22,624 bases of DNA from Anaeramoeba ignava BMAN (Eukaryota; Protista; Anaeramoebae), in assembly GCA_028826165.1 (NCBI GenBank), contig JAPDFW010000084.1, positions 325,615 to 348,238 of the forward strand. The letters run 5' to 3'. The notes below the pieces were generated by a model that was given only the letters and a program-made list of their open reading frames with translations, did not search any database and had not been told where the DNA came from. Both the position numbers and the translations under genes were made by a program. Of the stretch, positions 3,101 through 22,624 are shown piece after piece; within the stretch, counting starts at the first letter, position 1; every line of letters begins with the position of its first letter.

Positions 3101-5428
3101 AAAATTCAATTAAAAAATCAAATTCAATTAAAAAATCAAGAAAAGGATAAAGATCCATTTATAACTTGCAGTATTATTGTTGAAGAAGATTTAAATGAAC
3201 TTGTTTTGATACAAGGATTTTCTGATGGAACAATCGAAATCAAAGATATTCCATTTTCATTGGAATGGCCAGTAAAATTTGAATCAGAAAAACAAGATAA
3301 AATCACAGCATTATTTTCGCCACAACTGAAAATCACCAAAACAAACGAAAAAAAAAACTCAATATTGAGACCAATAATAATATCAGGATCAGAAAATGGA
3401 GTGATTTACGTAAGAAATAGAATTACAAGAAAGACCATTGTCGAATATAATCATCATCGAGGTCGAATTAGACATATATTTTCTCCTCCTGAAAAAGTAG
3501 GAGAAATTCTCGATGACTATTTCATTGTTTTTGGGGATGATAAAGTCATTTCGGTTTGCTCACTTTCACATTTTCAAATATTATACCTTTTTGGAGGATT
3601 TTTATCGACGCCCAAGAAAATATTTTGGAGAAATGCAAACGATTTCATCGGCATTGAGTGTGACGATCAGACAATATATGTATGGGATTTATCAACTGGA
3701 AAATTGGATCGGATCTTGCTATCTCAAAATTCAATCAATATTTCAGGAATCACAAACTTCAATCAATATCGGAATATTTTTGAAAAAAAATGGAATCACA
3801 TTTCATCACGAACACAGTTCCAAGATTATCTACTTGGCTGTGCACCGCTTTATCCATTTGCTTTTCGAGAGATTACTCACGTAACTGATATTTATATCGA
3901 TAACCAGGAATCAAACAATATCATTTATGTCAATGTGAATACTCTGTTGAATAATTTAGTTTCGAATTTAAAAGAAAATCCAAGAGAACTCAAGGGTAAA
4001 TTGAGACTAATTACCCATTTTTTCTCGTGGGGACTTGATCGAAAATTTGACGAATATATAGAAAAAATGTTCCATATTTATACTCCAAATCACGAAATGG
4101 CAGTCGGAATCATCGGGAGTTGTCAAAATATTTCGTTGATGATTCCAAGAAAAGTGGACGATCAAATGGCGTCCAAACTCACAATTTCAGAGCAAATCAC
4201 TGCAATATTCTCAATAATCCCGCTTGCACTTGCAATGGCTTTATCGACTCTTGAATCATCGCAAATGCAACAAATCGGATCAGAGATTGCACTTTATTAC
4301 ACAGAAATTTTGCGGAATAAATTAGGGAAAGAATACGTGACTCCTTGTCTCGAATTCTTATGTATTTATTGGTGTGATGATTGTGTTTATATTGAAAACG
4401 CGGCGCGAACTTTGATTCGTTCTGTGATTTCAAGAATGAGTCCAAATCAAAAAAGTTCGCTCATTGAAATTTGGAAAAAAGTTCTTTCTGGCCCACTTTC
4501 TGAAACCCGCAGAGAAACAGGATTTCTTGTGCTTGGAATCATGTGTATTTGCTCTCCAGAATCTGTTTCTTCAACTCTTTTTTCTCAAGTTTGCCAAAAT
4601 TTATTGAACATGATCCGCAAAAAAGGAAGAAAAGCAGCGATTGCAATTGATTTATTAGCTTCTGGATTCAAAAACTTCCAAAAATTCATTGAAAATCAAG
4701 AGGAGCTTATTTGCTATCTATTCAATCTTATTTGCATTTCGGATTCAACTCGTAAAGAGTCTGCAAGAGTTTCCATTTTGTTGGTTGGATTGCATCATCC
4801 GTTGCTAGTTCTTACTTCTTTGGAATCCCAAATACACATGAAAAACACACTCATCACTTCACAAGAAACTGCGAGATTATTGACTGTTTTGATGATCCAA
4901 AAAAATGCAAATTCAATTTATCCTCATTTACTCAAAACAGTGGAAATTCTTGTCAAATCAATGGAAGTCATCAATTCAGATTCAACCTTGTTTGAAATTG
5001 ACAAATCAGCAATCACTCAATTACTGAAAACATTCCCAATGACTGATTTTGACGAGGATCACCAAAGACTTGTTGTCGGTTCAATTGATTCCAAAATGAC
5101 TATTTTTGATTTTAAATTGAATCATGTGTTCGTTCCAAAACAAATCCATAAAAATCCAATTTCCGCTGTTTCTTTTGCAAAAAACGGCAAGCTTTTGGCT
5201 TCGTATTCTCTAGATGATGAAAAAATTGTCATTTGGAGAGTCAGGATTTCTTTGTATAAAATTTTTCATGAACTTGCCAAACAGAAAAAAATTATTCAAG
5301 TTCCTTTTAAACAAAAAGTGAAATTAACAGAACAACTCGATAAAATGAATTTGAAATGGACTTCCGATAATACAATTTCATTAACTATCAAAGATTTTAC
5401 TTTCAATTTTAATATAAAACACAAATGA
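185..5428 (+). CDS. WDR7: WD40-repeat protein, WDR7/WDR72 (rabconnectin-3 beta) family, ~1300 aa; exons 185-482, 1740-1988, 2072-5428 with one apparent +1 frameshift near the A7 run 2637-2643
   Basis: The spliced translation gives VVWNSVLPPKHEIS..IITGTQTGQIFLW..PRALLLGHQTQIT..FASVSIDGSFCIWKLDDGYC, matching the remembered WDR7 N-terminus (VLWG..PTHCIS..IVTGCHDGQICLW..PRALLFGH..SGEMCLWDVSDGRC). PCLEFLCIYWCDDCVYIENAARTLI and the C-terminal RLVVGS..HKNPISAVSFAKNGKLLASYS..IVIW also match WDR7 motifs. Both GT-AG junctions are phase 1 and restore the frame. Confidence 0.88.
335..385 (+). repeat. Coding 9-nt repeat (AATAATTCA)5+ encoding an NNS insertion in a WD40 loop
   Basis: Direct reading. Confidence 0.9.
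483..1739 (+). other. Spliceosomal intron 1 of WDR7-like gene (1257 nt, GTATTT...TAAAG)
   Basis: G482 + TT(1740-41) = GTT (Val) joins FAS-V-SIDGSFCIW, completing a WD40 repeat; the interior is AT tandem repeat. Confidence 0.88.
515..1737 (+). repeat. Degenerate 12-nt minisatellite (ATGAAATTTATA / ATTAAATTTATA)n filling WDR7 intron 1
   Basis: Direct reading; it produces the spurious MKFI/IKFI ORFs in the ORF track. Confidence 0.95.
1989..2071 (+). other. Spliceosomal intron 2 of WDR7-like gene (83 nt, GTAAAT...TAAAG)
   Basis: C1988 + TT(2072-73) = CTT; joins exon 2 in frame to TPTILTALGTDQSLSFWKLP and ORF 2146-2706. Confidence 0.85.
2644..2680 (+). repeat. Coding hexamer (TTGGAT)n, LDLDLD tract
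   Basis: Direct reading; lies next to the apparent frameshift. Confidence 0.85.
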
Positions 5429-5476: not shown

Positions 5477-7265
5477 ATGAATGATTGTTTATTTTTTGGA
5501 AGAAATTATTATCCAAAACTTATCAAAAATGAACCAAAAGAAATAAAAAAACCAATTCAATTTAAATTTGAAAATGAAAATGAAAATGAAAATGAAAATG
5601 AAAAACAAATTAAACAAATTTCATCAGGAGATTTTTCAACAATTTTCCTTTTTAAAAATGGAAAAGCAATAGAATATTTAAATGAAAATGATTCAAATCA
5701 AAATCCTGAAAAAATACAAATTGAAAATATTCAAAAAGTAACTGTTGGTGCTTATAATGAAGCTATTTTAACAAAAGAAGGAAGTGTATTTGCCAAAGGA
5801 AAAGATATTAATCCAAAAAATCTAAATCAATTTATCAATATTTCATTATTAATTGAAGATACAAATGATAGAATAATTCAAGATATTGTTTCTGGATACA
5901 ATTCAATTTATTTATTAACTTCAAATCAAAATGCTTATGGAATTGGTTCAAATTATGATGGTCAACTTGGTTTTGATTATGAAATACTTGAAAAAACAGA
6001 AAAACCAATTTTAATGATGAAAAATGTTTCTAAAATATTTTCAGGAAATGATTCAAATCATGTTTTTCTTTTAAATTCAAATCAAGAATTATTTGGATGT
6101 GGATATAATGATTATGACCAACTTGGATTAGGAGAATCAATAATAGAAGAAAAAATCCAAAAATTAACCAAAATCCAAAATATTCCAAAAGGCAAAATAA
6201 TTGATATTCAATGTGGATATTCTCATTCAATAATGTTGATTGAAAATGAAAATGAAAATGAAAATCCAAAAAGAAAACTTTATTCATGCGGAAATTATCT
6301 ATTTAATGGACTTGACAAAGATGAACATACTTATGAATTTACTGAAATCAAATCATCTTTATTTGAAAATGATGATAATATTCTTGATTTTTCTGTTGGC
6401 TGTTTTCATAATTTGATTTTAACTTACAAAAGGAAATTAATAGTATTTGGAGATAATGAATATGGTCAATTAGGAATTGGAGATACAAAAAGATAAATCA
6501 ATTCCAATTCAAATTAAACTTCCTAAATTAAGATTTAATGAAAATATTTCTGATTATCATATTTCTTGTGGAGATTACAAATCATTTATTTACTATTCTC
6601 CTCCTTCTTTTTCCAATCTTGAAGAAGATTTGATAAAACTATTTAAAAGAAAAGAATTTTGCAATATTTCATTTAAAACAGAAAATGGAGAAATAATTGA
6701 AGCTCATAAATTAATATTAAAATATAGATTAAATCAAAATGAAAATCAAAATGAAATTGAAAAACTTCAAGAAATTATTTCAAAAAAATCAATTAAAGAA
6801 TCAAATCAAATATTTGAAATGATTTATTCAAACAATTCCAAAATAAATCCAATATTATATTCTGAAATTAAAGAAATTATAAATTCAAATGAAAAAATTG
6901 AAGAAACAATGAAAAGAATTTATTTAAATGAAAATGAAAATGAAAAAGATTTTATAATTGAAAGAAAAGAAAAACAATATAAATTTCCAAAATTAATATT
7001 AATAATGAGAAGTGAATTATATCGAGGAATGTTTTTATCTGTAACAAATGATACTTCTAATAAAGTTACAGATTATAGTGAATTAAGTAATAAATCATTT
7101 CAAATATTTGAATATTGGATTTATTCAAATCAAATCAAAGATGAAATTCAAATTACACAAGAAATAATTGATGAAATTCAAATTGGAATTGATTATTTTC
7201 AATTAAATCAAACAAATCCAAATTTATTTGATTTATTAATTAACAAATTTAATAATCAAAATTAA
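5477..7265 (+). CDS. RCC1/BLIP-II beta-propeller + tandem BTB/POZ protein, copy 1 (~595 aa; apparent +1 frameshift at A5 run 6487-6491)
   Basis: RCC1 motifs GSNYDGQLG, CGYSHS, FGDNEYGQLG; BTB motifs FCNISFK..EAHKLILKYR and KDFII..KLILIMRSELYRGMF. ORFs 5477-6496 and 6477-7265 join by removing one A, as in the paralogues. Confidence 0.88.
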
Positions 7266-7450
7266 AATTCAAAATTAAAATTAAAATTAAAATTAAAATT
7301 AAAATTCAAAATTAAAATTAAAATTAAAATTAAAATTAAAATTAAAATTAAAATTAAAATTAAAATTAAAATTAAAATTAAAATTAAAATTAAAATTAAA
7401 ATTAAAATTAAAATTAAAATTAAAAATCAAAATTAAATTTAAAATTAAAA
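7266..7450 (+). repeat. (AAAATT)n microsatellite immediately 3' of RCC1-BTB copy 1
   Basis: Direct reading, ~30 units; the stop codon is in register with the array. Confidence 0.95.
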
Positions 7451-7487
7451 TTCCAAAAATTATTTTTTCATTTTTTTCTTTTCAAAA

Positions 7488-9300
7488 ATGAATGAAATTA
7501 TATTTTTTGGTTCAAATCAAAAACCAATTCTTTTCAAAAATAAACCAAATATAATAACAAAACCAATTCAATTTAAATTTGAAAATGAAAATGAAAATGA
7601 AAATGAAAAACAAATTAAAAAAATTTCATCAGAAGAATTTTCAACAATTTTCCTTTTTGAAAATGGAAAAGCAATAGAATATTTAAATGAAAATGATTCA
7701 AATCAAAATCCTGAAAAAATCCAAATTGAAGAAAATATCCAAAAAGTAACTGTTGGTTGTTTTAATGAAGCTATTTTAACAAAAGAAGGAAATGTATTTG
7801 CCAAAGGTTATGATATTAATCCAAAAAATTTAAATGAATTTATCAATATTTCATCATTAATCGGAGATACAAATGATAGAGTAATTCAAGATATTGTTTC
7901 TGGAGGTGAAACAATTTACTTATTAACTTCAAATCAAAATGCTTATGGAATTGGTTCAAATTACTATGGTCAACTTGGTTTTTGGACAATGGAAAAAACA
8001 GAAAAACCAATTTTAATGATGGAAAATGTTTCTAAAATATTTTCAGGAAATTCTTCAATTCATGTTTTTCCTTTTAAATTCAAATCAAGAATTATTTGGA
8101 TGTGGATATAATGAATATGGCCAACTTGGATTAGGAGAATCAAGAAAAGAAGAAGAAAAAATCCAAAAATTAACCAAAATCCAAAATATTCCAAAAGGCA
8201 AAATAATTGATATTAAATGTGGATATTCTCATTCAATAATGTTGATTGAAAATGAAAATGAAAATGAAAATGAAAATGAAAAAAGAAAACTTTATTCATG
8301 TGGATTTTCTGGAAATAATGGACTTGACAAAGATGAAGATGAAGATGAAGATACTTATGAATTTACTGAAATCAAATCATCTTTATTTGAAAATGATGAT
8401 AATATTCTTGAAATTTTTCTGTTGGAAATTATCATACTTTGATTTTAACAAGAAAAGGGAAATTAATTGGATTTGGGAATAATGCTTCAGCCCAATTAGG
8501 AAATGAAGATATAAAAGATCAATTAATCCCTAATTCAAATTGAACTTCCTAAATTAAGATTTAATGAAAATATTTCTAATTATCATATTTCTTGTGGAGA
8601 AAATAATTCATTTTTTTATTATTCTTCTCCTTCTTTTTCCAATCTTGAAGAAGATTTGATAAAATTATTTAAAAGAAAAGAATTTTGTGATATTTCATTT
8701 AAAACAGAAAATGGAGAAATAATTGAAGCTCATAAATTAATATTAAAATATAGATTAAATCAAAATCAAGATCAAAATGAAATTGAAAAACTTCAAGAAA
8801 TTATTTCAAAAAAATCAATTAAAGAATCAAATCAAATATTTGAAATGATTTATTCAAACAGAATAATAAATCCAAAATTATATTCTGAAATTAAAGAAAT
8901 TATAAATTCAAATGAAAAAATTGAAGAAACAATGAAAAGAATTTATTTAAATGAAAATGAAAATGAAAATGAAAATGAAAAAGATTTTATAATTGAAAGA
9001 AAAGAAAAACAATATAAATTTCCTAAATTAATATTAATAATGAGAAGTGAATTATATCGAGGAATGTTTTTATCTGTAACTGAAGATAAATCAAATAAAG
9101 TTACAGATTATAGTGAATTAAGTAATAAATCATTTCAAATATTTGAATATTGGATTTATTCAAATCAAATTAAAGAAGGAATTCAAATTACACAAGAAAT
9201 AATTGATGAAATTCAATTTGGAATTGATTATTTTCAATTAAATCAAACAAATCCAAATTTATTTGATTTATTAATTAACAAATTTAATAATCAAAATTAA
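7488..9300 (+). CDS. RCC1 + tandem BTB protein, copy 2 (~602 aa; three apparent frameshifts at 8070-8071, 8411-8418, 8528-8532; could be a pseudogene)
   Basis: Colinear with copy 1 over its full length when the three indels are corrected; no in-frame nonsense codons seen. Confidence 0.78.
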
Positions 9301-9555
9301 AATTAAAATTAAAATTAAAATCAAAATTAAAAATTAAAATTAAAATTAAAATTAAAATTAAAATTAAAATTAAAATTAAAATCAAAATCAAAAATCAAAA
9401 TTAAAATTAAAACTAAAATCAAAATTTAAATTAAAATTAAAAATTAAAATTAAAATTAAAATTAAAATTAAAATCAAAATTTAAAATTAAAATTAAAATT
9501 AAAATTAAAATTAAAATTAAAATTAAAATCAAAATTAAAATCAAAAATCAAAATT
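9301..9555 (+). repeat. (AAAATT/AAAATC)n microsatellite between convergent RCC1-BTB copy 2 and the ankyrin-BTB gene
   Basis: Direct reading. Confidence 0.95.
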
Positions 9556-9575
9556 TATTCGTTTTCCAGTTGAGT

Positions 9576-12500
9576 TCAAAAATAAAAGAAAAAATTTGAA
9601 TTTGGATTTAATTGATAAAAATCTTTTAAATCAGCAAATTCTTCAATGTTTTGTTTTGTGGTTTTTGTTTCATCAAATTCATCATGATAAAGAAAATGGA
9701 TTAATTGTTGGATTGTTTCAAATGATTTTCCTGAATAATCATGAACTTGATTAGATGAATCATTAACACTTAAAAACATTCCTTTAAATAAATCACTTCT
9801 TATTATTAATATTAACTTATGAACTTTGATTTCTTTTTCATCTTCGCAAATTATTGTGAAATCTTTAGATTCATTTTCTTTATATAATTTCTGAAAATCT
9901 TTCAATATTCCTTTTCTTCCTCTTTTTGATTCAATCCAATTTGAATCTAATCCAATTTCTTTGAGAAAATTTTTCAATAGATGATATTTTTTGTTGGCAT
10001 CTTCTTGTAATTCTGAGCGTACTGCCAAAAAAGAGTTTTTTCGATGTTCCAAATCCAAGTTCATTAATTTTTCTCTTTCCAATTCTTTATCAGGATATTG
10101 ATTTGTTTTTGTGTTAAAAAATAAAAAGCTTTTTTCATCAATTTTTGAAAAATGAGGAAATCCTGTGTAAATGAATTCAAAAACAACTTGGACAATTTCT
10201 TTTGGAGATTGATAACATTTCTCAATGAATTTTTGTAAGAGAGTTGAATCACCATTTAGTCTTGTAAGAAGGATTAATTTGTGAACATTAAATTTACTCC
10301 CATCATTGCATTCAATTTGGAAATCTGCGAAATCATTTGACTTGAAGAGGTTATACAGATCTTGATTTATGGAATGGGTTTTTAGAAATAAATCAAATAG
10401 AGATAGATCCAATTCAAAGAGATTTTCTTCGAAAATTTTTGCATCATTCAAAATAAACAAATTAATTGCCTTTGTATTTTGCTTCCTATTTAACAACCAA
10501 AGCAAAGAGTTGTTTCTGGAAGTTTTTTGATTGATATCTGCGTTATTTTCAACAAGAATTTTTATCACATCATTCAAGTTATTCTCAATAGCAATTTCTA
10601 ATAATGTTTTCTTTTCGGAATTTCTAACATTCAAATCTGCTTTGCTTTTAATTAGGGATTTCATAATTTCTGGTGTTCTTTCATTGTAGTCTTTCAAGGC
10701 ACAAAATAATGGGGTTTCATTGTTATCTCTTTTGCAATTTAGATCAGCTCCTTTTTGGGTTAACAATTCAATAGTTTCCACTGAATGTTTAAAAAGGCAA
10801 GCATAGTGCAATGGAGTTACATTTTCAGTATTTTTTGCATTCACATCTGCTCCTTTTTCGATTAATAACTTGATTATTTGAGACAAATTTTCATTTTGTT
10901 GGTATTGACAAATTGCAAAATGTAAAGGAACTTCAAGGAAAATTGTTTTGGAATTAATATCAATTCCATTTTCAATCAAATATTTGATAATTTGGAGTGA
11001 ATTTTCATTTTGTTGGTATTGACAAGCTAAATGTAAAGCATTTTGTCTTGATTCTGTTTGAGCATTAATATCAATTCCATTTTCAATCAAATATTTGATA
11101 ACTTGAATACAATTTTCATTTTGTTGGTATTGACAAGCTAAATGTAAAGCATTTTGTTGTGATTTTGTTTGAGCATTAATATCAATTCCTTTTTCAACCA
11201 AATATTTGATAATTTGAATACAATTTTCGTTTTGTTGGTATTGGCAAGCTAAATGTAAAGCTGTTTCTTTTTGGTTTGTTTTCCAATTAATATCAATTCC
11301 TTTTTCAATTAAATACTTGATAATTTGGAGACAATTTTCATTTTGTTGGTATTGACAAGCTAAATGTAAAGCTGTTTCGCTTTGTTTTGTTTTCCAATTA
11401 ATCTTGATTCCTTTTTCAATTAAATACTTGATAATTTGGAGTGAATTTTCATTTTGTTGGTATTGGCAAGTTAAATGAAGAGGAGTTTGATTTTGATATG
11501 TTTTAGAATTAATATCAATTCCAATTTCAATCAGATATTTGATAATCTCAAATAATTTCTCATTTCTTTGATATTGACAAACTAAATGTAAAGCAGTTTC
11601 ATCATGAATATTTTTTGAATTAATATCAATTCCGTTTTCAACCAAATATTTGATAATTTGAAGTAAATTTTCATTTTGTTGGTATTGGCAGACAAAATGC
11701 AAAATTGATTCGTTTCTATTTTTTGTTTTAGAATTAATATCAATTCCTTTTTCAATGAAATATTTGATAATTTGGAGTATATTTTCATTTTGTTGGTATT
11801 GACAAGCTAAATGAAGAGGAGTTTCATCTTGGTCTGTTTGAGAATTAATATCGGTTCCATTTTCAACCAAATATTTGATAATTTGAATTAAATTTTCATT
11901 TTGTTGGTATTTCAAAGAAAAAAACAAGGCAGTTTGATTTACATTTGTTTGAACATTAAGGATCAATTCCTTTTTCAACTAAATACTTTATAATTTGGAG
12001 ACAATTTTCACTTTGTTGGTATTGACAAGCTAAATGTAAAGCGTTTTGTCTTGATTCTGTTTGAGCATTAATATCAATTCCTTTTTCAACCAAATATTTG
12101 ATAATTTTAAATGAATTTTCATTTTGCTGATGTTGACAAACTAAATGAAGAGGAGTTTGTTGTGATTTTGTTTTGTAACTAATATCGGTTCCACTTTCAA
12201 TTAATAATTTGATAATATCAAATAATTTCTCATTTTGTCTTTGACATAATAAAATTAGGGCAGTTTCTCCTAAATATCTTATTTTAGTATTAACATCAGC
12301 ACCTTTTCCAATAAGATATTTGATCATCTCAAATAATTGCGGGATTTCATATTGGCAAATGATCAAGAAAGGGGTTTGGTTTTGGTAGTCTGGCATGCAA
12401 TTAAGATCAGCTCCATTTTCAACCAATAATTTGATAATATCAAATAAATTCTCAATTTTATTGGAAGCTTTACAAAGAAAATGCAAAGGTAGTTCTTGAT

Positions 12501-13080
12501 GATAGGCAGTTTTTGCATTAATATCAGCACCTTTATCGATTAAGTATTTGAGAATTTCAATTGATTTTTCAACGTGAACTTTTTTTTGGGTTTGGTTCTT
12601 ATTATGATTTATATTTTGACTTTGAATCTGACTTTGACATAGAAAAAACAAAGATGTTTCTCCAAAAGTTCCTTTGGCATCGACATCATTTCCATTCTCA
12701 ATCAAAAATTTTATCAGCTCAAATAAATTTTCATTCCTACTGAAGGTTTGACAAAGAAAATGAAGAGGTGTTTCTTGGGAATATTTTGTTTTGGCATTGA
12801 CATCTGCACCATTTTCCGTTAAATATTGGATCATCTCAAATAGAAATTGATTTGAAGAGAAATCGAAATTGAAATTTAAATCAAAATCAGAATCAAAATT
12901 GTAAGTAAGAACTTTTGAGTTTTCTAGTAAAAATTTCGCAATTTCAGATGGAGATTCATTTCTACAAATTGAATGTAAAATGGTTTTATTGTTTGAATCT
13001 TTTAAATTTATTTGATTTTTCTCTTTACAAAAAAAATCAATTAAATTAAAAAAATTTTGAAAAGAATCTTTTTGGTTCAT
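9576..13080 (-). CDS. Ankyrin-repeat (~21 repeats, mostly 37 aa) + tandem BTB/POZ protein, ~1167 aa; apparent +1 frameshift at 11960-11961
   Basis: Repeated TPLH/ALHLACQYQQNEN..QIIKYLIEKGIDIN units. BTB1 FADFQIECNDGSKFNVHKLIL; BTB2 KDFTIICEDEKEIKVHKLILIIRSDLFKGMF. ORFs 11956-13080 and 9576-11978 join as GID-L-NVQT after removing one C. ATG is preceded by AAAA and TCATTTTT motifs. Confidence 0.9.
10870..12200 (-). repeat. Array of ~111-nt near-identical ankyrin-coding tandem repeats
   Basis: Recurrent GACAAGCTAAATGTAAAGC / TTTTCATTTTGTTGGTATTG on the + strand with ~111-nt period. Confidence 0.9.
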
Positions 13081-13268
13081 TTTTAATAAATGAAAAAATG
13101 AAAAAATGAAATTGAGAAATTTTTTGTTGTTTAAATTTCTTTATTTTCTGATTAAAGAATTTGCTAATCCAAAAAAAAAAAAAATAAAAGTTCACGAGTA
13201 CATTAAAAAATGGTAAAAAAAAAAAGTGGAAAAAAAAAAGAAGAAGAAGAAGAAGAAAAAAGAAAATT

Positions 13269-15385
13269 TTAATTGAAATCATCACTTTCCCAATCATCAT
13301 CTTGATTATCTTGTTGTTCTGCAAATTTTTGTTGTAATTGAGAAATGGAAGCTTTTAAAACTTTGATTTCTTGTTGAGAAGAATTTGCGATTTTTTGGAA
13401 TCTCAATTTATCTTTTGTTGCCTTTTCTAATTTAGAAGAAATTTCGCTGTTTTCAGCAATTAATCTTCTATTTTCATCAAGAAGAGTGTTTTGGATCAGC
13501 ATTAAATCTGAATGTGAGTCTGAATTTGGTTTTGCAATTTTGAGCTGTTCATTTTCTTTTGCAAGATCAGTGTTTTCTTGAATAAGTTTTTCAATTTCTG
13601 TTGTGAGCATATTGTTTGCTTCTACAAGTTGGTTATTCATAGATAATTGCTGAGATAAAGCAACGTTTTCTTGCTTCATTTTATTATTTTCAACCCTCAA
13701 TTTGGCAAGTTCTTCTGTTAATATCTGGTTTGATTGCGACAGGTTTTGATTTTCCACTTTGAGTGTTTGTTCTTGTTCGTATAATTTCTGTAGAAAACTT
13801 TCAATATCTTTTTCTTTTTTGGAAACGTTTTGTTTGAGCTTATCGTGCGTAGACATCATTTCGTCATACGCACTTGTTTTTTCTTGAAGGGTTTGTTTTA
13901 TCTTTTTATTTTCATTCAAAAGTTTGTCGATTTCTTGCGTTAATTTCAAGTTGATTGTGATGAGCGTTGAGTTTGCGCCATTATTTTCGGCGTTATGATC
14001 AGGATTTGTTTCCAGATCAGGCTCCAAAGTATGTTGTTCGGAATTTCGTGTTGGCGAAGGTGCCTTTTTTTCGGGTTTAGAAAGATTATATTTAGGTTTT
14101 CTATTTGGATTGGGGGATTCTTTTGATTCACCGTCTTTAGGCTTTTTTATTCTTAACGGTGTTCTTTTAATAGGTGATTTAGACTTATCAGGACTTGTTG
14201 GTCGGTTCAACTTTTTTTCAATTTCGGATCGATCCTGCGAAATTCGCGGATCAAAACTTTTGGCTTGTGCGCCAAGAACACCTTTGGAAGGAAGTTTCAA
14301 ACTCAGTCTTCTTGTGTTCATTTGACGGCGTTTTTGATGATCCACTTTTCGCAATCCAACGTCTTCAGGGCTATTTCCTTTGGATTCTTTTGGGCCTCGT
14401 GGTTTTGCTGTTTTTCCATCCTTTATTACTCTCTTTGTTGGTGATGGTGATTTGTTTTGTGGTGGTTCTGTTGTTGTTTCGTTAGGTAGTTTAGGTTTTC
14501 TTATTTGTCCTGATATCGCCATAGGTCTTGTTGTTGATGTTCTTTTTACTTTGATTACTTTCTTCACCTTTTTCGGTTTGTCGTTTTCTTGTGATTCTGA
14601 TTCTTCCGTGTTGTTTTCTTCTTTTTTTTCAATTACTTTTGTTACTGTTTCTATTGGTTTTGGTTTTTGTTTTTGTTCTGTTTCTTCGACTTGGAATCCA
14701 ACTTTTTTATCGAGATAAACTTTTCAATTTTAAATTTATAATAAATTTTATAAATTTTATAAATTTTATAAATGAATTTTAATTTTATATTAAATTAAAT
14801 TTTATAAATGAATTTTATAATTTTAATTTTATATTAAATTTAATTTTAATTTTATATTAAATTTTATAAATTAATTTTATGAATGGATTTTAATTTTATA
14901 AATGAATTTTAATTTTAATTTTAATTTTAATTTTATATTAAATTTATAAATGAATTTTAATTTTAATTTAATTTTATGAATGAATTTTAATTTTAATTTT
15001 AATTTTAATTTTATAAATGAATTTTAATTTTTATATTTACGTTGCTCATCAACAAGTTTATTAAAATGTTCTTGACAATAAAATTTCTTATCAAGAAATT
15101 GATAAGAATTAACTGAAAGAGCTTTTTGACAAACACAACATCTTTTAAATTTTTAAATTTTAAATTAAATTTTAAATTAAATTTTTAATTAAATTTTTAA
15201 AGAGAAAAAAAAATTTTTTATAAAATTTGAATTATAATATTTTTTTAATATTTTTTAATATTCTTTTATTCTTACTTAAAACAATTTTTGTGTGCAATAA
15301 ATCCTTTCAAATCAATTTTTTGTGAAGATTTTATTGATAATTCACAAACTGGACAAAGAACTTTTTTTCTTCGAAACATTGACAT
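13269..15385 (-). CDS. LIM-domain + disordered Pro/basic region + coiled-coil protein with acidic DDDW C-terminus, 553 aa; exons 15385-15276, 15141-15041, 14719-13269
   Basis: The spliced N-terminus MSMFRRKKVLCPVCELSIKSSQKIDLKGFIAHKNCFKCCVCQKALSVNSYQFLDKKFYCQEHF is a complete LIM double zinc finger (CxxC..HxxCxxCxxC..CxxH). Junction phases (2 and 1) put exon 3 in frame with ORF 13269-14567, which has a heptad-rich C-terminal half. Confidence 0.9.
14720..15040 (-). other. Intron 2 of LIM gene (321 nt, GTAAAT...GAAAAG), made of AAAATT / AAAATTCATTTAT repeats on the sense strand
   Basis: C + TT = CTT joins DEQ-L-YLDKKVG in frame with the long exon. Confidence 0.87.
15142..15275 (-). other. Intron 1 of LIM gene (134 nt, GTAAGA...TAAAAG)
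   Basis: Splits the LIM domain at CF-K-CCVC; canonical GT/AG with the correct phase. Confidence 0.9.
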
Positions 15386-15678
15386 AAAAAAATAAAAATT
15401 TAAAACCCTTTTTTATTTAATGAAAAAAAAGAAAAATAATAAAAAGAAAAAAATGAAAAAAAATGAAAAATAAAAAAATGAAAAAAAATTTTTTTAAACT
15501 TGAGAACTTGAATTTTATTTATTTTTCCTTTTTTCGTTTCTAAATTAAAAAAAGAAGAAATAAAAATAAAAATAAAAATAAAATTTTAATCAATCAGAAA
15601 AATTTCAATCAATTTTTTTCTTTTGGATAAATAATTAAAAATAGAAAAAGAAAAAGAAAAAAAGAAGAAGAAGAAAAA

Positions 15679-15686
15679 TTACGTCA
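15679..15686. promoter_or_regulatory. CRE/ATF-like element TTACGTCA (TGACGTAA) in the divergent intergenic region
   Basis: bZIP-type ACGT core in a very GC-poor 376-nt spacer between divergent ATGs at 15385 and 15762. Confidence 0.4.
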
Positions 15687-15761
15687 GAAAAGAAATAAAA
15701 TTAAAAATTAAAATTTTAAAATTTTTTCATTTTTTTCTTTTTTAAAAATCAAAAATTAAAA

Positions 15762-16337
15762 ATGGATCACGATCAAGTAAAATCATTAGGAAGAAAAGGA
15801 AGAAGAAATAAAAGAAAAAAAAGAAAAAAAACTGGACATAGATTACATGTATCACCTTGTAGCAAAAGATTAGGAAATTCAATTCAAAAAGGAATTGGAT
15901 GGGGTTTTGCAAATTTAGCAAAATCAAGATTAGATAAAAAATTAGCAAAAGATTTATGCCGGAAATTTGATTCAAATTTCTCAATTTCTGCCAAAGAATT
16001 GGAACAGCAAATCCAAAAAGAACATTCAATTGATAATTCTTCTCATTTTGAAAGATTAATGAAAAACAATCTAAATCACTTTGCAAACAAAGATGAAAAA
16101 ATTGAAAAAAATTCTTATAATGATTTTTTGTTTTCTTCTCAAATTGCAAATGATTTAATTAAAGAATTTGGATTTGAAATGTTCGATCCTTTAGGAGAAG
16201 AAACAAGAAATAATATGATAAATGGAAATGAAAATGAAAATGAAAATGAAATTTTAAGAAATGAATTAACAGATATTATAATAGAACTTCTTGAAGAATA
16301 TGAAATTGTTGATAATGAGAAAGAAAATATTGATTGA
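15762..16337 (+). CDS. Hypothetical protein, 191 aa; basic NLS-like N-terminus (GRKGRRNKRKKRKK) and acidic C-terminus
   Basis: AAAAATG start context, upstream TCATTTTT motif, codon usage and ENENE tract like neighbouring genes; no recognised domain. Confidence 0.7.
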   Translation: MDHDQVKSLGRKGRRNKRKKRKKTGHRLHVSPCSKRLGNSIQKGIGWGFANLAKSRLDKKLAKDLCRKFDSNFSISAKELEQQIQKEHSIDNSSHFERLMKNNLNHFANKDEKIEKNSYNDFLFSSQIANDLIKEFGFEMFDPLGEETRNNMINGNENENENEILRNELTDIIIELLEEYEIVDNEKENID

Positions 16338-16476
16338 TATTCTTTGAAACTTTTTAAAAAAAAACTTATTATTTTCGTTCTTCTTTTTTTTTTTGCTTTT
16401 TTTTTTACAAAATTTTTTTTTTAAATTTATTAAATTCATTTTTTCATTTTTTTTCTTTTTTCTATTTTCTTTAAAA

Positions 16477-17838
16477 ATGAAAATTTTATTGTTTTTATTT
16501 CTGTTTCATTTATTTCTCAATTCTTATCAAGATTGTGCTAGTGATTTTGATTGTCGAACAAGAAAATATCCAGTTTGTGAAAATTCTAATTGTGTTGAAT
16601 GTCGAAATTCATCAGATTGTGATTTTGATTCATATTGCAATACAGACTCTTATGAATGTCAAAAATACAAAGATGATAATAAGTTTAAAAAATTTTGTCA
16701 ATCAGATGATTGTGCTGATAATAATAATGCAGAAGTTTGTGGTGTTTGTAATGGTGGTTATCAATGGACTGGTTCTTGTATTGAATTTAAATGTTATCCA
16801 TGCCAAGTTAATGGTCCTGATTCTGAAATAATGTAATTTAAAATTAAAATTAAAATTCATTTACAAATTAAAATTAAAAATTCATTTACAAATTAAATTC
16901 AAAATTCATTTACAAATTAAAATTAAAATTAAAATTAAATTCAAAATTAAAATTAAAATTAAAATTAAAATTAAAATTAAAATTCATTTACAAATTAAAA
17001 TTAAAATTAAAATTAAAATTAAAATTTAAAATTAAAATTAAAATTAAAATTAAAATTAAAATTAAAATTAAAATTAAAATTCAAAATTAAAAATTCATTT
17101 AAAAATTAAAATTAAAATTAAAATTAAAATTAAAATTAAAATTAAAATTAAAATTAAAATTAAAATTAAAATTAAAATTAAAATTAAAATTAAAATTAAA
17201 ATTAAAATTAAAATTAAAATTTAAAATTAAAATTAAAATTAAAATTAAATTTAAAATTAAAATTAAAATTCAATTAAAATTAAAATTAAAATCAAAATTA
17301 AAATTAAAAATTAAAATTAAAATTAAAATTAAATCAAAATTAAAATTAAAATTAAAATTAAAATTAAAATTCAAAATTCAAAATTAAAAATAAAAATCAA
17401 AATCAAAAATCAAAATTAAAAATTCAAAATTAAAATTAAAATTAAAAAAATTAAAATTAAAATTAAAATTAAAATTAAAATTAAAATTAAAATTAAAAAA
17501 TTAAAATTAAAATTAAAATTAAAATTAAAATTAAAATTAAAATTAAAATTAAAATTAAAATTAAAATTAAAATTAAAATTAAAATTAAAATTAAAATTAA
17601 AATTAAAATTAAAATTAAATTGAAAATAAAATTTAAAAGGCAATCACATAAAGATGTCGCAAGATGTTATCCAAAATCAACATCAGGTTCAGGTGGTTAT
17701 TTAGGTCCATATCAAGCAACTGAAGGAAGACCAAGAGATCTTAAACAAGATTCTCCAACACTTGGATTAATGATGCTTGGTTTTGCATTTGGAATTATGA
17801 CTATTCTTCAATGCATTATTTTCTTTAAAATTCGGTGA
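16477..17838 (+). CDS. Small cysteine-rich type I membrane protein, 184 aa; exons 16477-16832 and 17640-17838
   Basis: Signal peptide MKILLFLFLFHLFLNSYQ; 16 ectodomain Cys (15 in exon 1 + 1 in exon 2, an even number only after splicing); TM helix LGLMMLGFAFGIMTILQCIIFF followed by KIR-stop; phase-2 junction AT|G. Confidence 0.85.
16833..17639 (+). other. Intron of the Cys-rich membrane protein gene (807 nt, GTAATT...TAAAAG), almost pure (AAAATT)n
   Basis: GT at 16833, AG at 17638-17639, frame restored; essentially G-free interior. Confidence 0.87.
16840..17620 (+). repeat. (AAAATT)n microsatellite, >100 units, with interspersed ATTCATTTAC units
   Basis: Direct reading. Confidence 0.95.
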
Positions 17839-18001
17839 ATGTATTTCTCTCTCTCTCTCTCTTTTTTTTGCTTTAAAAATTAATTTTCAATTATTTTTCA
17901 ATTTAAATTCTCTTTTTAGAGAAATAATAAAAATAATAAAAAAAAACAATCATTTTATTTTCTCTTAATTTTTGGATTTTCATTTTTTTTCTTTTTTAAA
18001 A

Positions 18002-19796
18002 ATGAATCAAATATTCTTTTTTGGTTTTGATAAAACTTCAACTAATTTTTTTTTTAAAGACAGAGAATCAAAATCAATTAAAGAAATAACAGAATTATGT
18101 TTTGAAAATGAAAATGAAAATGAAAATGAAAATGAAAATGAAAAACAAATTAAACAAATTTCTTCTTCAAGTTTTTCAACAATTTTCCTTTTTAAAAATG
18201 GAAAAGCAATAGAATATTTAAATGAAAGAGATTCAAATCAAAATCCTTCAAAAATCCAAATTGAAAATATTCAAAAAGTATCTGTTGGTTATGATAATGA
18301 AGCTATTTTAACAAAAGAAGGAAATGTATTTGCCAAAGGAAAAGATATTAATCCAAATAACCTAAAAGAATTTATCAATATTTCATCATTAATTGAAGAT
18401 ACAAATGATAGAATAATTCAAGATATTGTTTCTGGATACAGTTCAATTTACTTATTAACTTCAAATCAAAATGTTTATGGAATTGGTTCAAATCATTATG
18501 GTCAACTTGGTTTTGATTCTAAAACACTTTATGAAACACAAAAACCAATTTTAATGATGAAAAATGTTTCTAAAATATTTTCAGGAAATTCTTCAAATCA
18601 TGTTTTTCTTTTAAATTTAAATCAAGAATTATTTGGATATGGAAGAAATTATCACAGTCCACTTGGATTAGGAGAATCAAGAAAAGAAGAAACAAAAATC
18701 CATAAATTAACCAAAATCCAAAATATTCCAAAAGGTAAAATAATTGATATTAAATGTGGAAGTTGGCATTCAATAATGTTGATTGAAAATGAAAATCAAA
18801 AATCCAAAAAGAAAACTTTATTCAGCTGGTTATTCTCAATTTAATGGACTTGGCAAAAATCAAAATACTTATGAATTTACTGAAATCAAATCATCTTTAT
18901 TTGAAAATGATAATATTATTATTGATTTTTCTGTTGGATATTCTCATACTTTGATTTTAACTTCTAATTCAAAATTAATAGGATTTGGAGATAATTTTTT
19001 AGGTCAATTAGCAAGAGGGAATATAGGACCAGAAAGAAAACCAATTCAAATTAAACTTCCTAAATTAAGATTTAATGAAAATATTTCTGATTATCATATT
19101 TCTTGTGGTGTATCGAATTCATTTCTTTATTATTCTCTTTCTTTTTCCAATCTTGAAGAAGATTTGATAAAATTATTTGAAAGAAAAGAATTTTGTGATA
19201 TTTCATTTAAAACCGAAAATGGAGAAATAATTGAAGCTCATAAATTAATATTGAAATATAGATTAAATCAAAATGAAAATCAAAATCAAATTGAAAAACT
19301 TAAAGAAATTATTTCAAATAAATCAATTAAAGAATCAAATCAAATATTTGAAATGATTTATTCAAACAGAAAAATAAATCCAAAATTATATTCTGAAATT
19401 AAAGAAATTATAAATTCAAATGAAAAAATTGAAGAAACAATTAAAAGAATTTATTTAAATGAAAATGAAAATGAAAAAGATTTTATTATTGAAAGAAAAG
19501 AAAAACAATATAAATTTCCAAAATTAATATTAATAATGAGAAGTGAATTATATCGAGGAATGTTTTTATCTGTTACAAATGATACTTCTAATAAAGTTAC
19601 AGATTATAGTGAATTAAGTAATAAATCATTTCAAATATTAGAATATTGGATTTATTCAAATCAAATCAAAAAAGGAATTGAAATTACACAAGAAATCATT
19701 GATGAAATTAAAATTGGAATTGATTATTTTCAATTAAATCAAACAAATCCAAATTTATTTGATTTATTAATTAAAAAATTTAATAATCAAAATTAA
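18002..19796 (+). CDS. RCC1 + tandem BTB protein, copy 3 (~597 aa; apparent +1 frameshift at A5 run 18798-18802; divergent first ~33 aa)
   Basis: True ATG at 18002 (AAAAATG context); colinear with the paralogues; removing one A gives ENQNPKRKLYSAG. Confidence 0.88.
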
Positions 19797-19879
19797 AATT
19801 AAAATTAAATTCAAAATTAAATTCAAAATCAAAATCTAAAAATATTTTTTCATTTTTTTCATTTTTTTACTTTTTCAAA

Positions 19880-21729
19880 ATGAATGAAATTATATTTTTT
19901 GGTCAAAATCAATATCCAAAACTTTTCAAAAATGAACCAGATATAATAATAAAACCAATTCAATTTAAATTTGAAAATGAAAATGAAAATGAAAATAAAA
20001 AACAAATTAAACAAATTTCAACAGGAAATTTTTCAACAATTTTCCTTTTAAAAATGGAAAAGCAATAGAATATTTAACTGAAAATCCTTATAATCAAAAT
20101 CCTTTTAAAATCCAAATTGAAGAAAATATTCAAAAAGTAACCGTTGGTTTTCAAAATGAAGCTATTTTAACAATAGAAGGAAATGTATTTGCCAAAGGAT
20201 TTAATATTAATTTAAATAATCCAAAAGAATTTATCAATATTTCATCATTAATTGAAAATAAAAATGATAGAATAATTCAAGATATTGTTTCTGGAAGATA
20301 TGCAATTTACTTATTAACTTCAAATCAAAATGCTTATGGAATTGGTTCAAATCAATTTGGTCAACTTGGTTTTGATTCTTATTATAAAACAGAAAAACCA
20401 ATTTTAATGATGAAAAATGTTTCTAAAATATTTTCAGGAAATTCTTCAGATCATGTCTTTCTTTTAAATTCAAATCAAGAATTATTTGGTTGCGGATATA
20501 GTAACTTTGGTCAGCTTGGATTCAGAAAATCAAGAAAAGAAGAAACAAATATCAAAAAATTAACACAAATCCAAAATATTCCAAAAGGCAAAATAATTGA
20601 TATTAAATGTGGATATTTTCATTCAATAATGTTGATTGAAGATGAAAATCGAAATCAAGATCAAGAAAGAAAACTTTATTCATGTGGAAATTATCAATAT
20701 AATGGACTTGGCAAAAAAAAAGGAGATACTTACGAATTTACTGAAATCAAATCATCTTTATTTCAAAATGATGATGTTATTGATTTTTCTGTTGGATATT
20801 CCCATACTTTGATTTTAACAACACATGGAAAGCTTATCGGATTTGGATATAATACTTATGGTCAAGTAGGAATTGAAAATAGAATAGATACTCAATTAAT
20901 TCCAATTCAAATTGAACTTCCTAAATTAAGATTTAATGAAAATATTTACAATTATCATATTCTTTGTGGATATTCCAAATCATTTCTTTATTATTCTCCT
21001 TTTCTTTCTTCTTTTTCCAATATTGAAGAAGATTTGATAAAATTATTTGAAAGAAAAGAATTTTGTGATATTTCATTTAAAACCAAAAATGGAGAAATAA
21101 TTGAAGCTCATAAATTAATATTGAAATATAGATTAAATCAAAACCAAAATCAAATTAAAAAACTTGAAGAAATTATTTCAAAAAAATCAATTAAAGAATC
21201 AAATCAAATATTTGAAATGATTTATTCAAACAAAATAATAAATCCAAAATTATATTTAGAAATTAAAGAAATTATAAATTTAAATGAAAAAATTGAAGAA
21301 ACAATGAAAAGAATTTATTTAAATGAAAATGAAAATGAAAAAGATTTTATAATTGAAAGAAAAGAAAAACAATATAAATTTCCAAAATTAATATTAATAA
21401 TGAGAAGTGAATTATATCGAGGAATGTTTTTATCTGTAACAAATGATACTTCTAATAAAGTTACAGATTATAGTGAATTAAGTAATAAATCATTTCAAAT
21501 TTTTGAATATTGGATTTATTCAAATCAAATCAAAAAAGGAATTCAAATTACACAAGAAATCATTGAAGAAATTCAAATTGGAATTGATTATTTTCAATTA
21601 AATCAAACAAATCCAAATTTATTTGATTTATTAATTAATAAATTTAATAATCAAAATCAAAATCAAAATCAAAATCAAAATCAAATTGAAAAAGAGGAAG
21701 AAAAAGAAAAAAAATGTTTAATTTTTTAA
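19880..21729 (+). CDS. RCC1 + tandem BTB protein, copy 4, with C-terminal CaaX (CLIF), ~616 aa; apparent -1 frameshift at T4 run 20046-20049
   Basis: Paralogues have T5 here (CTT TTT AAA AAT). After correction the frame is open from 20050 into ORF 20407-21729, which ends NQNQNQIEKEEEKEKKCLIF-stop. Confidence 0.88.
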
Positions 21730-21995
21730 TAAGAAATAATTGAAGAAATTAAAATTGGAATTGATTATTTTCAATTAAATCAAACAAATCCAAATTTATT
21801 TGATTTATTAATTAATAAATTTAATAATCAAAATCAAAATCAAAATCAAAATCAAAATCAAAATCAAATTGAAAAAGAGGAAGAAAAAGAAAAAAAATGT
21901 TTAATTTTTTAATAAGAAATCATTGAAGAAATTCAAATTGGAATTGATTATTTTCAATTAAATGAAACAAATCCAAATTTATTTGATTTATTAAT
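21553..21995 (+). repeat. Tandem ~2.5x repeat of the RCC1-BTB C-terminal/CaaX cassette (units 21553-21729, 21730-21912, partial 21913-21995)
   Basis: 177- and 183-nt units (differing by one AATCAA hexamer), all in the same frame and separated by TAA TAA. Confidence 0.92.
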
Positions 21996-22055
21996 CAAAA
22001 TTAAAATCAAAATCAAAATCATTTTTCATTTTTTTCATTTTTTTACTTTTCAAAA

Positions 22056-22624
22056 ATGAATGAAATTATATTTTTTGGAAGAAATCAATATCCAATTCTT
22101 TTCAAAAATGAACCAAATGAAATAACAAAACCAATTCAATTTAAATTTGAAAATGAAAATGAAAATAAAAATGAAAATAAAAAACAAATTAAACAAATTT
22201 CATCAAGTTATTTTGGAACATTTTTCCTTTTTAAAAATGGAAAAGCAATAGAATATTCAAAACAAAATCCTGAAAAAATCCAAATTGAAAATATTCAAAA
22301 AGTATCTGTTGGTTCTGATAATGAAGCTATTTTAACAAAAGAAGGAAGTGTATTTGCCAAAGGAAAAGATATTAATCCAAAAAATCCAAAAGAATTTATC
22401 AATATTTCATCATTAATTGAAGATACAAATGATAGAATAATTCAAGATATTGTTTCTGGAGCTCTTGCAATTTACTTATTAACTTCAAATCAAAATGCTT
22501 ATGGAATTGGTTCAAATTATTCTGGTCAACTTGGTTTTGATTATGAAATACTTAAAAAAACAGAAAAACCAATTTTAATGATGAAAAATGTTTCTAAAAT
22601 ATTTTCAGGAAATTCTTCAAATCA
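22056..22624 (+). CDS. RCC1 (+ presumably BTB) protein, copy 5, 5' part; runs off the window end
   Basis: ATG at 22056; MNEIIFFGRNQYPILFKNEP...VSVGSDNEAIL...VSGALAIYLL...GSNYSGQLGFDYEIL, open to the end of the window. Confidence 0.88.
   Translation, partial: MNEIIFFGRNQYPILFKNEPNEITKPIQFKFENENENKNENKKQIKQISSSYFGTFFLFKNGKAIEYSKQNPEKIQIENIQKVSVGSDNEAILTKEGSVFAKGKDINPKNPKEFINISSLIEDTNDRIIQDIVSGALAIYLLTSNQNAYGIGSNYSGQLGFDYEILKKTEKPILMMKNVSKIFSGNSSN

Follow-up and report, generated by a model that had tools for sequence, protein, structure and literature searches.

A hypervariable RCC1-BTB-BTB family in the anaerobic amoeba Anaeramoeba ignava resembles a germline repertoire of intracellular recognition proteins

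To our knowledge, expanded families of Cullin-RING adaptors have long been proposed to act as intracellular immune receptors on little direct evidence, and in animals and plants only. Expansions of this kind, affecting MATH-BTB and F-box adaptors in Caenorhabditis and in grasses, were reportedly described by Thomas in 2006 (Genome Research). These are large, lineage-specific tandem families with many pseudogenes, in which a conserved Cullin-docking domain is combined with a substrate-binding domain under positive selection, and an anti-pathogen role has been proposed for them. PMC4334554 refers to the work by Thomas. Other relevant systems combine similar domains in small numbers of genes. RCBTB1, RCBTB2, and IBTK carry an RCC1 propeller followed by BTB domains; IBTK, which is presented as a CRL3 substrate receptor in PMC4447969, also has ankyrin repeats and two BTBs. 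In HERC5 and HERC6, an RCC1-like domain with positively selected codons is tied to ubiquitin/ISG15 ligase function in an immune effector (PMC7775381). Finally, the HNWD NOD-like receptors of Podospora anserina (het-d, het-e, het-r) have a β-propeller sensor, whose units are kept more than 80% identical by concerted evolution, with a few fixed hypervariable positions per unit that lie on the interaction face, are under diversifying selection, and are reshuffled by recombination (PMC12222747).

The DNA analyzed here, referred to as the window, is a stretch of 22,624 nucleotides from Anaeramoeba ignava, a metamonad (Metamonada) and anaerobic amoeba with bacterial symbionts. It holds members of a gene family that has the appearance of a hitherto undescribed germline repertoire of proteins for intracellular recognition, and whose observed and predicted features resemble those of the known systems above. 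It differs from the MATH-BTB and F-box expansions in that the variable domain is an RCC1-like propeller rather than MATH or FTH, in having two BTBs, in having far more copies for the size of the genome, in the much greater likeness of these copies outside the loops, and in its host, a metamonad that lives freely and harbors bacterial symbionts. RCBTB1/2 and IBTK, which we likened to the family by domain order and automatic names, are conserved single- or few-copy genes without hypervariable loops; RCC1+BTB clusters occur in animals and oomycetes. HERC5 and HERC6 have a fused HECT ligase instead of CUL3 docking, comprise one or two genes per genome, and have been selected between species instead of within a swarm of paralogues (PMC7775381). 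In HNWD proteins, near-identical WD40 repeats lie inside one gene next to a NACHT/HET death module, whereas the A. ignava family consists of whole paralogous genes combining RCC1 blades with a ubiquitin-ligase adaptor; in formal terms the ankyrin gene of the window, in which 12 repeats of 37 aa are near-identical, comes closer to them.

The window contains the following features:

5477–7265, + strand: copy A, RCC1-BTB-BTB; propeller 5477–6614, BTB-BTB cassette 6615–7262, BTB2 core motif 6990–7043 (ORFs, Pfam, motif coordinates)
near 6492, + strand: frame break of copy A, one net +1 frameshift (indel map)
7270–7420, + strand: (TAAAAT)n microsatellite spacer; further ones at 9292–9541, 16942–17615, and 21652–21681
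7488–9300, + strand: copy B, RCC1-BTB-BTB pseudogene; cassette 8641–9297, conserved 5' leader 7466–7490 (ORFs, Pfam, indel map, motif coordinates)
8070, 8411, 8531, + strand: frame breaks of copy B, at least three frameshifts (indel map)
9576–13080, − strand: ankyrin-repeat and BTB-BTB gene; BTB1 from near 10361, BTB2 core motif 9765–9818 (ORFs, Pfam)
11956–11978, − strand: frame split of the ankyrin gene into two overlapping frames (ORFs)
10851–12238, − strand: ankyrin unit array inside the ankyrin gene; 12.4 copies of a 111-bp (37-aa) unit, 78% identity
18002–19796, + strand: copy D, RCC1-BTB-BTB; cassette 19149–19793, leader 17978–18004, frame broken by a 7-nt insertion at 18791 (ORFs, Pfam, indel map)
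19880–21729, + strand: copy E, RCC1-BTB-BTB; cassette from 21019, frame broken where a T run at 20046 has lost 1 nt (ORFs, Pfam, indel map)
21715–21729, + strand: C-terminus of copy E, where an NQ-repeat read-through leads into a polybasic CaaX end (CLIF)
21731–22000, + strand: two additional tandem copies of the ~170-nt end of copy E; DYFQLN motifs located at 21763 and 21946, second CLIF-stop at 21898–21912
22058–22624, + strand: copy F, RCC1-BTB-BTB; frame open to the window end

Pfam finds RCC1 repeats (PF00415, PF13540, PF25390) in all four complete RCC1-BTB copies and ankyrin repeats in the minus-strand gene, all five carrying two BTB/POZ stretches (PF00651) above the gathering score. Rfam and tRNA scans of the window returned no RNA genes. 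According to the indel map, all four complete copies (A, B, D, and E) are frame-broken; some of the single-base breaks in homopolymers may be errors of the Nanopore-based assembly. Copy F is cut by the window end, and only its first propeller blades are therefore visible. The original prediction, made from the window alone, that six genes share a tandem-BTB cassette was borne out, with five RCC1 copies, including the truncated copy F, and one ankyrin gene out of about ten or eleven genes, and the BTB2 motifs said to be common to the RCC1 family and the ankyrin gene (KDFxI..KLILIxRSxLxxGMFLSV..D.SN.V.DYS..S and D[YF][FY]QLN) are real. A near-invariant BTB half next to a diversified repeat domain, as also claimed, is seen in the amino-acid identities among the RCC1-BTB copies of the window, which amount to 92–95% in the BTB-BTB half versus 75–85% in the propeller half and only 11–38% at hypervariable positions.

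The expectation of a large repertoire rather than a few copies holds genome-wide. A conserved 30-mer of BTB2 has 1,274 matches in the 42.8 Mb genome and its reversed control has 0; with about 1,270 copies in 43 Mb, the family makes up ~6% of the genomic DNA. The copies lie on most contigs in tandem arrays with a spacing of roughly 2 kb, and a (TAAAAT)n spacer follows nearly every unit. They are 92–97% identical to each other, and the closest relatives outside A. ignava are less than 30% identical. Among 150 scored loci, 88 (~59%) have an open frame of at least 580 aa and ~41% are broken, the pattern of a lineage-specific tandem-array expansion with birth and death. The units adjoin directly via microsatellites, and conservation upstream is limited to a leader of ~30–40 nt before the ATG, which rules out that they are transposon passengers. 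As to lateral transfer, the few RCC1-annotated candidates in the tables of PMC11550330 are mostly from A. flamelloides and differ from the RCC1-BTB-BTB family. Our literature search retrieved no published description of the family and no paper joining Anaeramoeba with BTB or RCC1; the terms RCC1, BTB, and cullin are absent from the main text of the genome paper (PMC11550330), and its supplementary text, of which one file was available in part, contains no such family. Protein analyses drew on 113–120 annotated proteins; of the copies that entered the codon analyses, 18 were intact and 35 partial or broken. Broken copies were searched piecewise or aligned as DNA with the affected codons scored as missing, the frames being left unrepaired and the exons unjoined. 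Transcript evidence was sought via protein clusters: none of the ~130 clusters of the family has a transcriptome-derived member; CUL3 and two divergent RCC1-BTB members do have such cluster members.

An AF2 model of the RCC1-BTB-BTB protein (pLDDT 85.7) displays a seven-bladed RCC1-like propeller followed by two helical/β BTB-like modules at residues 379–470 and about 490–595. In Foldseek searches, the propeller matches RCC1, the HERC2 RLDs, RPGR, and UVR8 with target-normalized TM scores of 0.70–0.81 (0.75–0.81 for RCC1, HERC2, and RPGR). Polybasic CaaX ends were found in 20 of the 120 proteins (~1 in 6), and the copies that carry them are predicted from this signature to sit on membranes. 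A Ras-family GTPase + BTB gene with an identical CLIF tail also exists.

The variation of the propeller is concentrated in about 30–40 hypervariable codons, which form roughly 15 patches. In each blade of the model these occupy two loops, the hairpin between strands 1 and 2 and the loop after strand 3, which lie on one face according to the strand topology; in the alignment with UVR8, the G-x-x-H patch falls on G-W-R-H-T. This is presumably the face by which RCC1 binds Ran. As the loop-bearing face is hypervariable among copies, it is incompatible with one conserved partner, and the family would thus lack the conserved Ran-binding face of RCC1 proper, the Ran guanine-nucleotide exchange factor. 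The loop residues are rich in Tyr, His, Asp, Arg, and Trp, with Tyr alone accounting for 18% versus 3% in the framework. Each of 113 proteins has a unique loop signature, and the patches assort almost independently.

Pairwise Nei-Gojobori counting places the BTB-BTB half under purifying selection (dN 0.029, dS 0.077, dN/dS 0.38) and gives dN/dS above 1 in the propeller loops only, and divergence along the protein is thus non-uniform, as the original prediction required of a diversified repertoire. The hypervariable codons have a dN of 0.81 compared to a framework dS of 0.10, an ~8-fold ratio that would be inflated if gene conversion homogenized the framework and so lowered its dS too far. In cross-validation, dN/dS at these codons is 2.7 when computed locally, a figure that rests on saturated codons, and 8.5 against the rest. 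Synonymous divergence itself falls from 0.21 adjoining a hypervariable codon to 0.05 far away. The youngest tandem pair differs by 17 non-synonymous and 3 synonymous changes in five clusters, and two further recent pairs show only a ~2-fold enrichment of changes at loop positions. Neighboring patch alleles are each common to disjoint sets of unlinked copies, which, together with the clusters in the youngest pair and the local fall in dS, fits change in short tracts. DGR-like targeted mutagenesis of the reverse-transcriptase type is unsupported, since the changes hit more than one base and the loops are just 2–5 fold enriched in young pairs.

A host CUL3, presupposed by the proposed role of the BTB proteins as adaptors, is present as one clear orthologue. 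The locus (L033) has Cullin-3 as its best match (E 4e-127 versus 2e-107 for CUL4), and the annotated protein (P0270), which was used for the CUL3 analyses in place of a joined exon model, is named "cullin-3a-related", with all nearest relatives named cullin 3 or CulC. Complex prediction docks BTB2 on CUL3 with a score of 0.69 in three runs versus 0.07 for the best of three controls; because BTB-CUL3 complexes have already been solved, this score may reflect likeness or memory rather than binding. Of 78 solved complexes, 51 attain the mark applied to the score, as do 2 of 108 mismatched pairs. In the predicted complexes, contacts agree in at least 71%, the partner pLDDT is at least 79, and residues 42–59 and 106–121 of CUL3 (H2 and H5, its canonical docking helices) face residues 513–524, 530–534, and 569–575 of BTB2. 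The predicted docking surface of BTB2 is almost invariant, constitutes the most conserved surface of the protein, and contains a motif common to the ankyrin family.

The ankyrin gene of the window comes from a family of its own, with more than 140 members; variation in the 37-aa unit array of the gene is concentrated in the hairpin positions. The cassette of this gene is homologous to that of the RCC1 family but distinct (45% identity over 96 aa, E 8e-16, for BTB2; 37% for BTB1), which does not agree with the original idea of interchangeable sensors on a shared constant module. Members of the ankyrin family are 50–63% identical to each other, compared to 92–97% in the RCC1 family, and judged by these identities the ankyrin family is the older one. 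As the cassettes are distinct and the ages of the families differ greatly, the sequences speak for a parallel expansion of two architectures rather than recent domain swapping, and the ankyrin gene is a member of a second, older family of the same construction. The original interpretation as a whole is thus partly supported.

The window is part of an A. ignava-specific family of ~1,270 intronless genes and pseudogenes encoding a seven-bladed propeller and two BTBs, which we consider, with a probability of roughly 0.6, to be a germline repertoire of CUL3 substrate receptors directed against fast-changing proteins. Every protein would serve CUL3 as a substrate receptor of individual specificity, and the family as a whole would mark many diverse, fast-changing proteins for ubiquitination. 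The targets would most plausibly come from symbiotic or prey bacteria, viruses, or mobile elements; the role may be an "immune" one. The repertoire appears to grow through dispersal and through unequal crossing-over between (TAAAAT)n spacers. While the frameworks stay alike, short tracts of the loop patches would be exchanged or altered, with selection maintaining the differences. Only tentatively would we go as far as to regard ~750 intact intracellular receptors as an antibody-like germline library, with loops reshuffled among paralogues by very short gene-conversion tracts and a prenylated, membrane-anchored subset policing the contents of symbiosomes or phagosomes via CUL3-dependent ubiquitination.

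The same data would fit CUL3 adaptors aimed at proteins of the cell itself or at selfish genes, acting in intragenomic conflict, kin or mating incompatibility, or the control of Anaeramoeba's very large families of trafficking proteins. The GTPase + BTB gene with the CLIF tail points in this direction, as do the expansion of membrane-trafficking families stressed by the genome paper (PMC11550330) and the fungal propeller receptors of equal variability pattern that serve self/non-self incompatibility (PMC12222747). However, ~750 specificities with Tyr-rich, antibody-like loops exceed the expected need of endogenous substrates, and A. ignava is the less expanded of the two species with respect to trafficking families (PMC11550330), which makes such targets unlikely.

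Still less probable is that the BTBs only oligomerize and that the propeller is a GTPase regulator or membrane scaffold resembling claret, RPGR, or HERC1, with no role in ubiquitination. RCC1-like domains of known proteins bind small GTPases, the CaaX tails resemble those of Rho GTPases, and the automatic names given to the proteins include "claret" and "secretion-regulating GEF" besides "BTK-binding protein-related" (NCBI/PANTHER). Nevertheless, hypervariability of the whole propeller face is unfit for a conserved GTPase partner, and the surface that is most conserved, and common to the ankyrin family, is the predicted CUL3 dock.

Least probable of all is that the family is a repeat, amplified recently and for the most part silent, making up a swarm of pseudogenes with loop variation arising from mutational hot spots or relaxed constraint: the broken frames (41% overall and all four complete copies in the window), the ~130 clusters lacking a transcriptome-derived member, and the clustering of changes, synonymous sites included, agree with it, but relaxed constraint cannot yield a dN several-fold above dS, purifying selection acts on the BTB half (dN/dS 0.38), ~59% of the 1.8 kb frames are open in a genome of 80% A+T, where stops arise easily, each unit keeps the conserved leader, and some single-base homopolymer breaks may stem from Nanopore assembly.

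The A. ignava family is an extreme case among expanded adaptor families, and its host is a protist that can be cultured and whose bacterial symbionts are defined. A constant half with the predicted docking surface is cleanly set apart from roughly 15 hypervariable loop patches, and the fold has several solved relatives; expression, binding partners, and the diversification of loops on a near-constant framework are directly testable here, and the protein offers a natural scaffold whose tolerance of loop variation is already mapped. If the tentatively proposed antibody-like library is real, it would be among the largest receptor families known to us relative to genome size, and would represent a new architecture for cell-autonomous immunity in eukaryotes.

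Within the extremely A+T-rich window, Pfam and a comparison of the BTB sequences bear out the original prediction that six of the ten genes carry a homologous tandem-BTB cassette with shared motifs:

5477–7265, +, copy A, RCC1 repeats then two BTB stretches (Pfam)
7488–9300, +, copy B, RCC1 repeats then two BTB stretches (Pfam)
13080–9576, −, ankyrin gene, ankyrin repeats then two BTB stretches (Pfam)
18002–19796, +, copy D, RCC1 repeats then two BTB stretches (Pfam)
19880–21729, +, copy E, RCC1 repeats then two BTB stretches (Pfam)
from 22058, +, copy F, fifth RCC1-BTB copy, continuing past the window end

Pairwise identity among the RCC1-BTB copies of the window is 92–95% in the BTB-BTB half, 75–85% in the propeller half, and 11–38% at the hypervariable positions. 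The indel map shows broken frames in all four complete copies, with a +1 shift near 6492 in copy A, at least three shifts in copy B, a 7-nt insertion at 18791 in copy D, and a −1 shift within a T run at 20046 in copy E; the reading frame of the ankyrin gene is split at 11956–11978. Some of these breaks may be homopolymer assembly errors instead of true pseudogene lesions: the A. ignava assembly was built with Nanopore reads (PMC11550330), and such errors have been recorded in comparable work (PMC12222747). Elsewhere in the window, a WD40-containing gene (2146–5428, +) has two frames overlapping at a GF/DL dipeptide (dinucleotide) repeat (2645–2706), an overlap with three candidate explanations: an intron, an error by slippage, or a genuine frameshift. 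A 147-aa ORF (16393–16836, +) with a hydrophobic N-terminus and a Cys-rich body is possibly a small secreted protein, and an island of higher G+C content of ~200 nt (17640–17840; 72-aa ORF at 17620–17838), which lies inside a microsatellite desert, gave no match in Rfam and tRNA scans.

The RCC1-BTB family is large. A BTB2 30-mer occurs 1,274 times in the 42.8-Mb assembly (≤3 mismatches) vs 0 for the reversed control, and the family runs on most contigs with a spacing of about 1.9–2.2 kb. With 88 of 150 scored loci keeping a frame open over 580 aa or more, the family would number roughly 750 intact and roughly 500 broken genes, together ~6% of the genome. A full-length copy on a different contig matches an annotated A. 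ignava protein without a difference, and each of the 120 best database relatives likewise comes from A. ignava, under automatic labels like 'claret isoform a' and 'btk-binding protein-related'; divergent RCC1-BTB members (35–58% identity, some N-terminally extended) are also from A. ignava. Outside this species, no full-length relative exceeded ~30% identity in an exhaustive profile search. An RCC1+BTB protein of the sister species reaches 27% identity, and the domain order is widespread across eukaryotes. No transcript-derived protein of this young family occurs among the family relatives and protein clusters, nor is the family treated in the A. ignava genome paper (PMC11550330).

A confident AlphaFold2 model of the RCC1-BTB-BTB protein (pLDDT 85.7, 74-sequence alignment), matched by Foldseek to the propellers of RCC1, HERC2, RPGR, and UVR8, comprises a seven-bladed propeller (residues 1–372), BTB1 (379–470), and BTB2 (about 490–595). 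Among 113 proteins, entropy exceeds 2.5 bits only in short patches recurring in each blade, namely the two residues after Gly in a G-x-x-H hairpin and the two or three residues preceding G-Q-L-G. In each repeat of the model, the patches occupy the strand 1–2 loop and the loop after strand 3, which in an antiparallel blade share one face, and the hairpin patch aligns with G-W-R-H-T of UVR8, a region that forms the UVR8 interaction face. The predicted placement of all hypervariable loops on one propeller face rests on this strand topology and alignment. Tyr (18% vs 3%), His, Asp, Arg, and Trp are over-represented among the hypervariable residues. Each of the 113 proteins has a loop signature of its own; every patch of two or three residues occurs in 45–81 alleles, and one patch varies almost independently of another.

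The proposed diversification of the repeat domain on a conserved BTB half is matched by dN/dS, which reaches 2.6 at the hypervariable codons.

Substitution rates per domain (Nei–Gojobori counts; 18 intact and 35 partial copies)
BTB-BTB: dN 0.029, dS 0.077, dN/dS 0.38
Propeller framework: dN 0.083, dS 0.099, dN/dS 0.83
40 hypervariable codons: dN 0.81, dS 0.31, dN/dS 2.6

With one half of the data used to choose the hypervariable codons and the other half to measure them, dN/dS came to 2.7 locally and 8.5 relative to the remaining codons.

Loop difference is ~80% at any framework synonymous distance (r = 0.07), and the frameworks are therefore either very young or held alike by conversion. In gap-free neighbourhoods, dS falls from 0.21 at one codon from a hypervariable codon to 0.13 at two and 0.08 at three to five; from nine codons onward it is 0.05. 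Of the 20 codons that differ within the youngest tandem pair (framework pS 0.007), 17 are changed non-synonymously; the differences form five clusters, which take in two of the three synonymous changes (chance about 0.004 by our own calculation). One copy of this pair has two patches 78 nt apart whose alleles each recur in three unlinked copies, with no copy common to the two sets, while its partner has a unique allele at one of them. The clustered changes and these disjointly distributed alleles suggest exchange of short tracts among paralogues, together with selection. Targeted hypermutation of the loops is not claimed, because changes at loop positions in two further recent pairs are enriched only about 2-fold.

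The idea of one shared constant module with swapped sensors did not survive. BTB2 and BTB1 of the ankyrin gene are 45% (E 8e-16) and 37% identical to those of the RCC1 genes, and its cassette as a query finds >140 further loci at 50–63% identity; those sampled are ankyrin + BTB in all but one, L055, a locus elsewhere in the genome with a Ras-family GTPase domain fused to BTB (2295–3647, +, C-terminal KGKCLIF). At the sequence level, these matches indicate two families with homologous cassettes that expanded separately, the ankyrin family being old and diverged and the RCC1 family young. The CaaX tail of L055 is the same as in the RCC1-BTB members predicted to be prenylated. The ankyrin gene contains an internal array (10851–12238, −) of 12.4 near-identical 111-bp repeats (78% matches), whose differences cluster in the hairpin, in the residues preceding L-H and those following D-I-N; this pattern of 'high internal conservation' resembles fungal NLR repeats.

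The CUL3 that the predicted adaptors would engage is present in the host genome as one locus on contig 58, which encodes an annotated 736-aa protein, also found in a transcriptome-derived collection, whose nearest relatives are all cullin 3. The other cullin loci are best matched by CUL1/2 (one) and CUL4 (four: L031, L032, L035/L039, and L036), so that CUL4 seems to have multiplied while CUL3 is single. Complex prediction with CUL3 1–390 and the BTB-BTB cassette scored 0.69 over three runs (contact agreement ≥71%, partner pLDDT ≥79), and the highest of three controls scored 0.07. When the tool was calibrated, 51 of 78 solved complexes attained that mark, as did 2 of 108 mismatched pairs. The predicted interface joins CUL3 42–59 and 106–121 to ELYRGMFLSVTE, VTDYS, and IGIDYFQ of BTB2, the motif seen originally as conserved between the RCC1 and ankyrin families. 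The prediction supports a likeness to known BTB-CUL3 complexes and is not proof of binding; by sequence, the nearest solved BTB is KBTBD4, weakly (E 0.006).

Each unit consists of a conserved leader of ~30–40 nt abutting the ATG, an intronless ORF, and a (TAAAAT)n microsatellite. The leader (TTTCATTTTTTTCTTTTCAAAA then ATG; in the window at 7466–7490 and 17978–18004) is conserved over ~25–40 nt ahead of nearly every copy, and at loci L003–L030 elsewhere in the genome it lies upstream of each ATG. Its TCAT core recalls the initiator element of parabasalid promoters, and by this analogy a minimal promoter may come with every unit. The microsatellites (7270–7420, 9292–9541, 16942–17615, and 21652–21681) stand after the stop codon in family members and likewise in the ankyrin gene (9500–9555). 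Terminal Asn-Gln (NQ) repeats are encoded by the C-variant of the hexamer, (CAAAAT)n, so that one C/T change shifts the stop codon, and in 20 of 120 proteins the frame continues to a polybasic stretch and CLIF (CaaX box). Copy E has the CLIF tail, and the final ~170 nt of this copy are present three times. The two extra tandem copies, including DYFQLN and CLIF-stop, occupy 21731–22000, a repetition left by unequal recombination at the 3′ end.

The core observation with which the analysis began is confirmed. Among known systems, the MATH-BTB/F-box expansions and the fungal propeller NLRs (PMC12222747) come closest, and HERC5/6 are a parallel case in which an RCC1-like domain serves immunity (PMC7775381). 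As far as computation reaches, the RCC1-BTB family is supported as an adaptor repertoire, the targets of which would, by inference, be foreign proteins.
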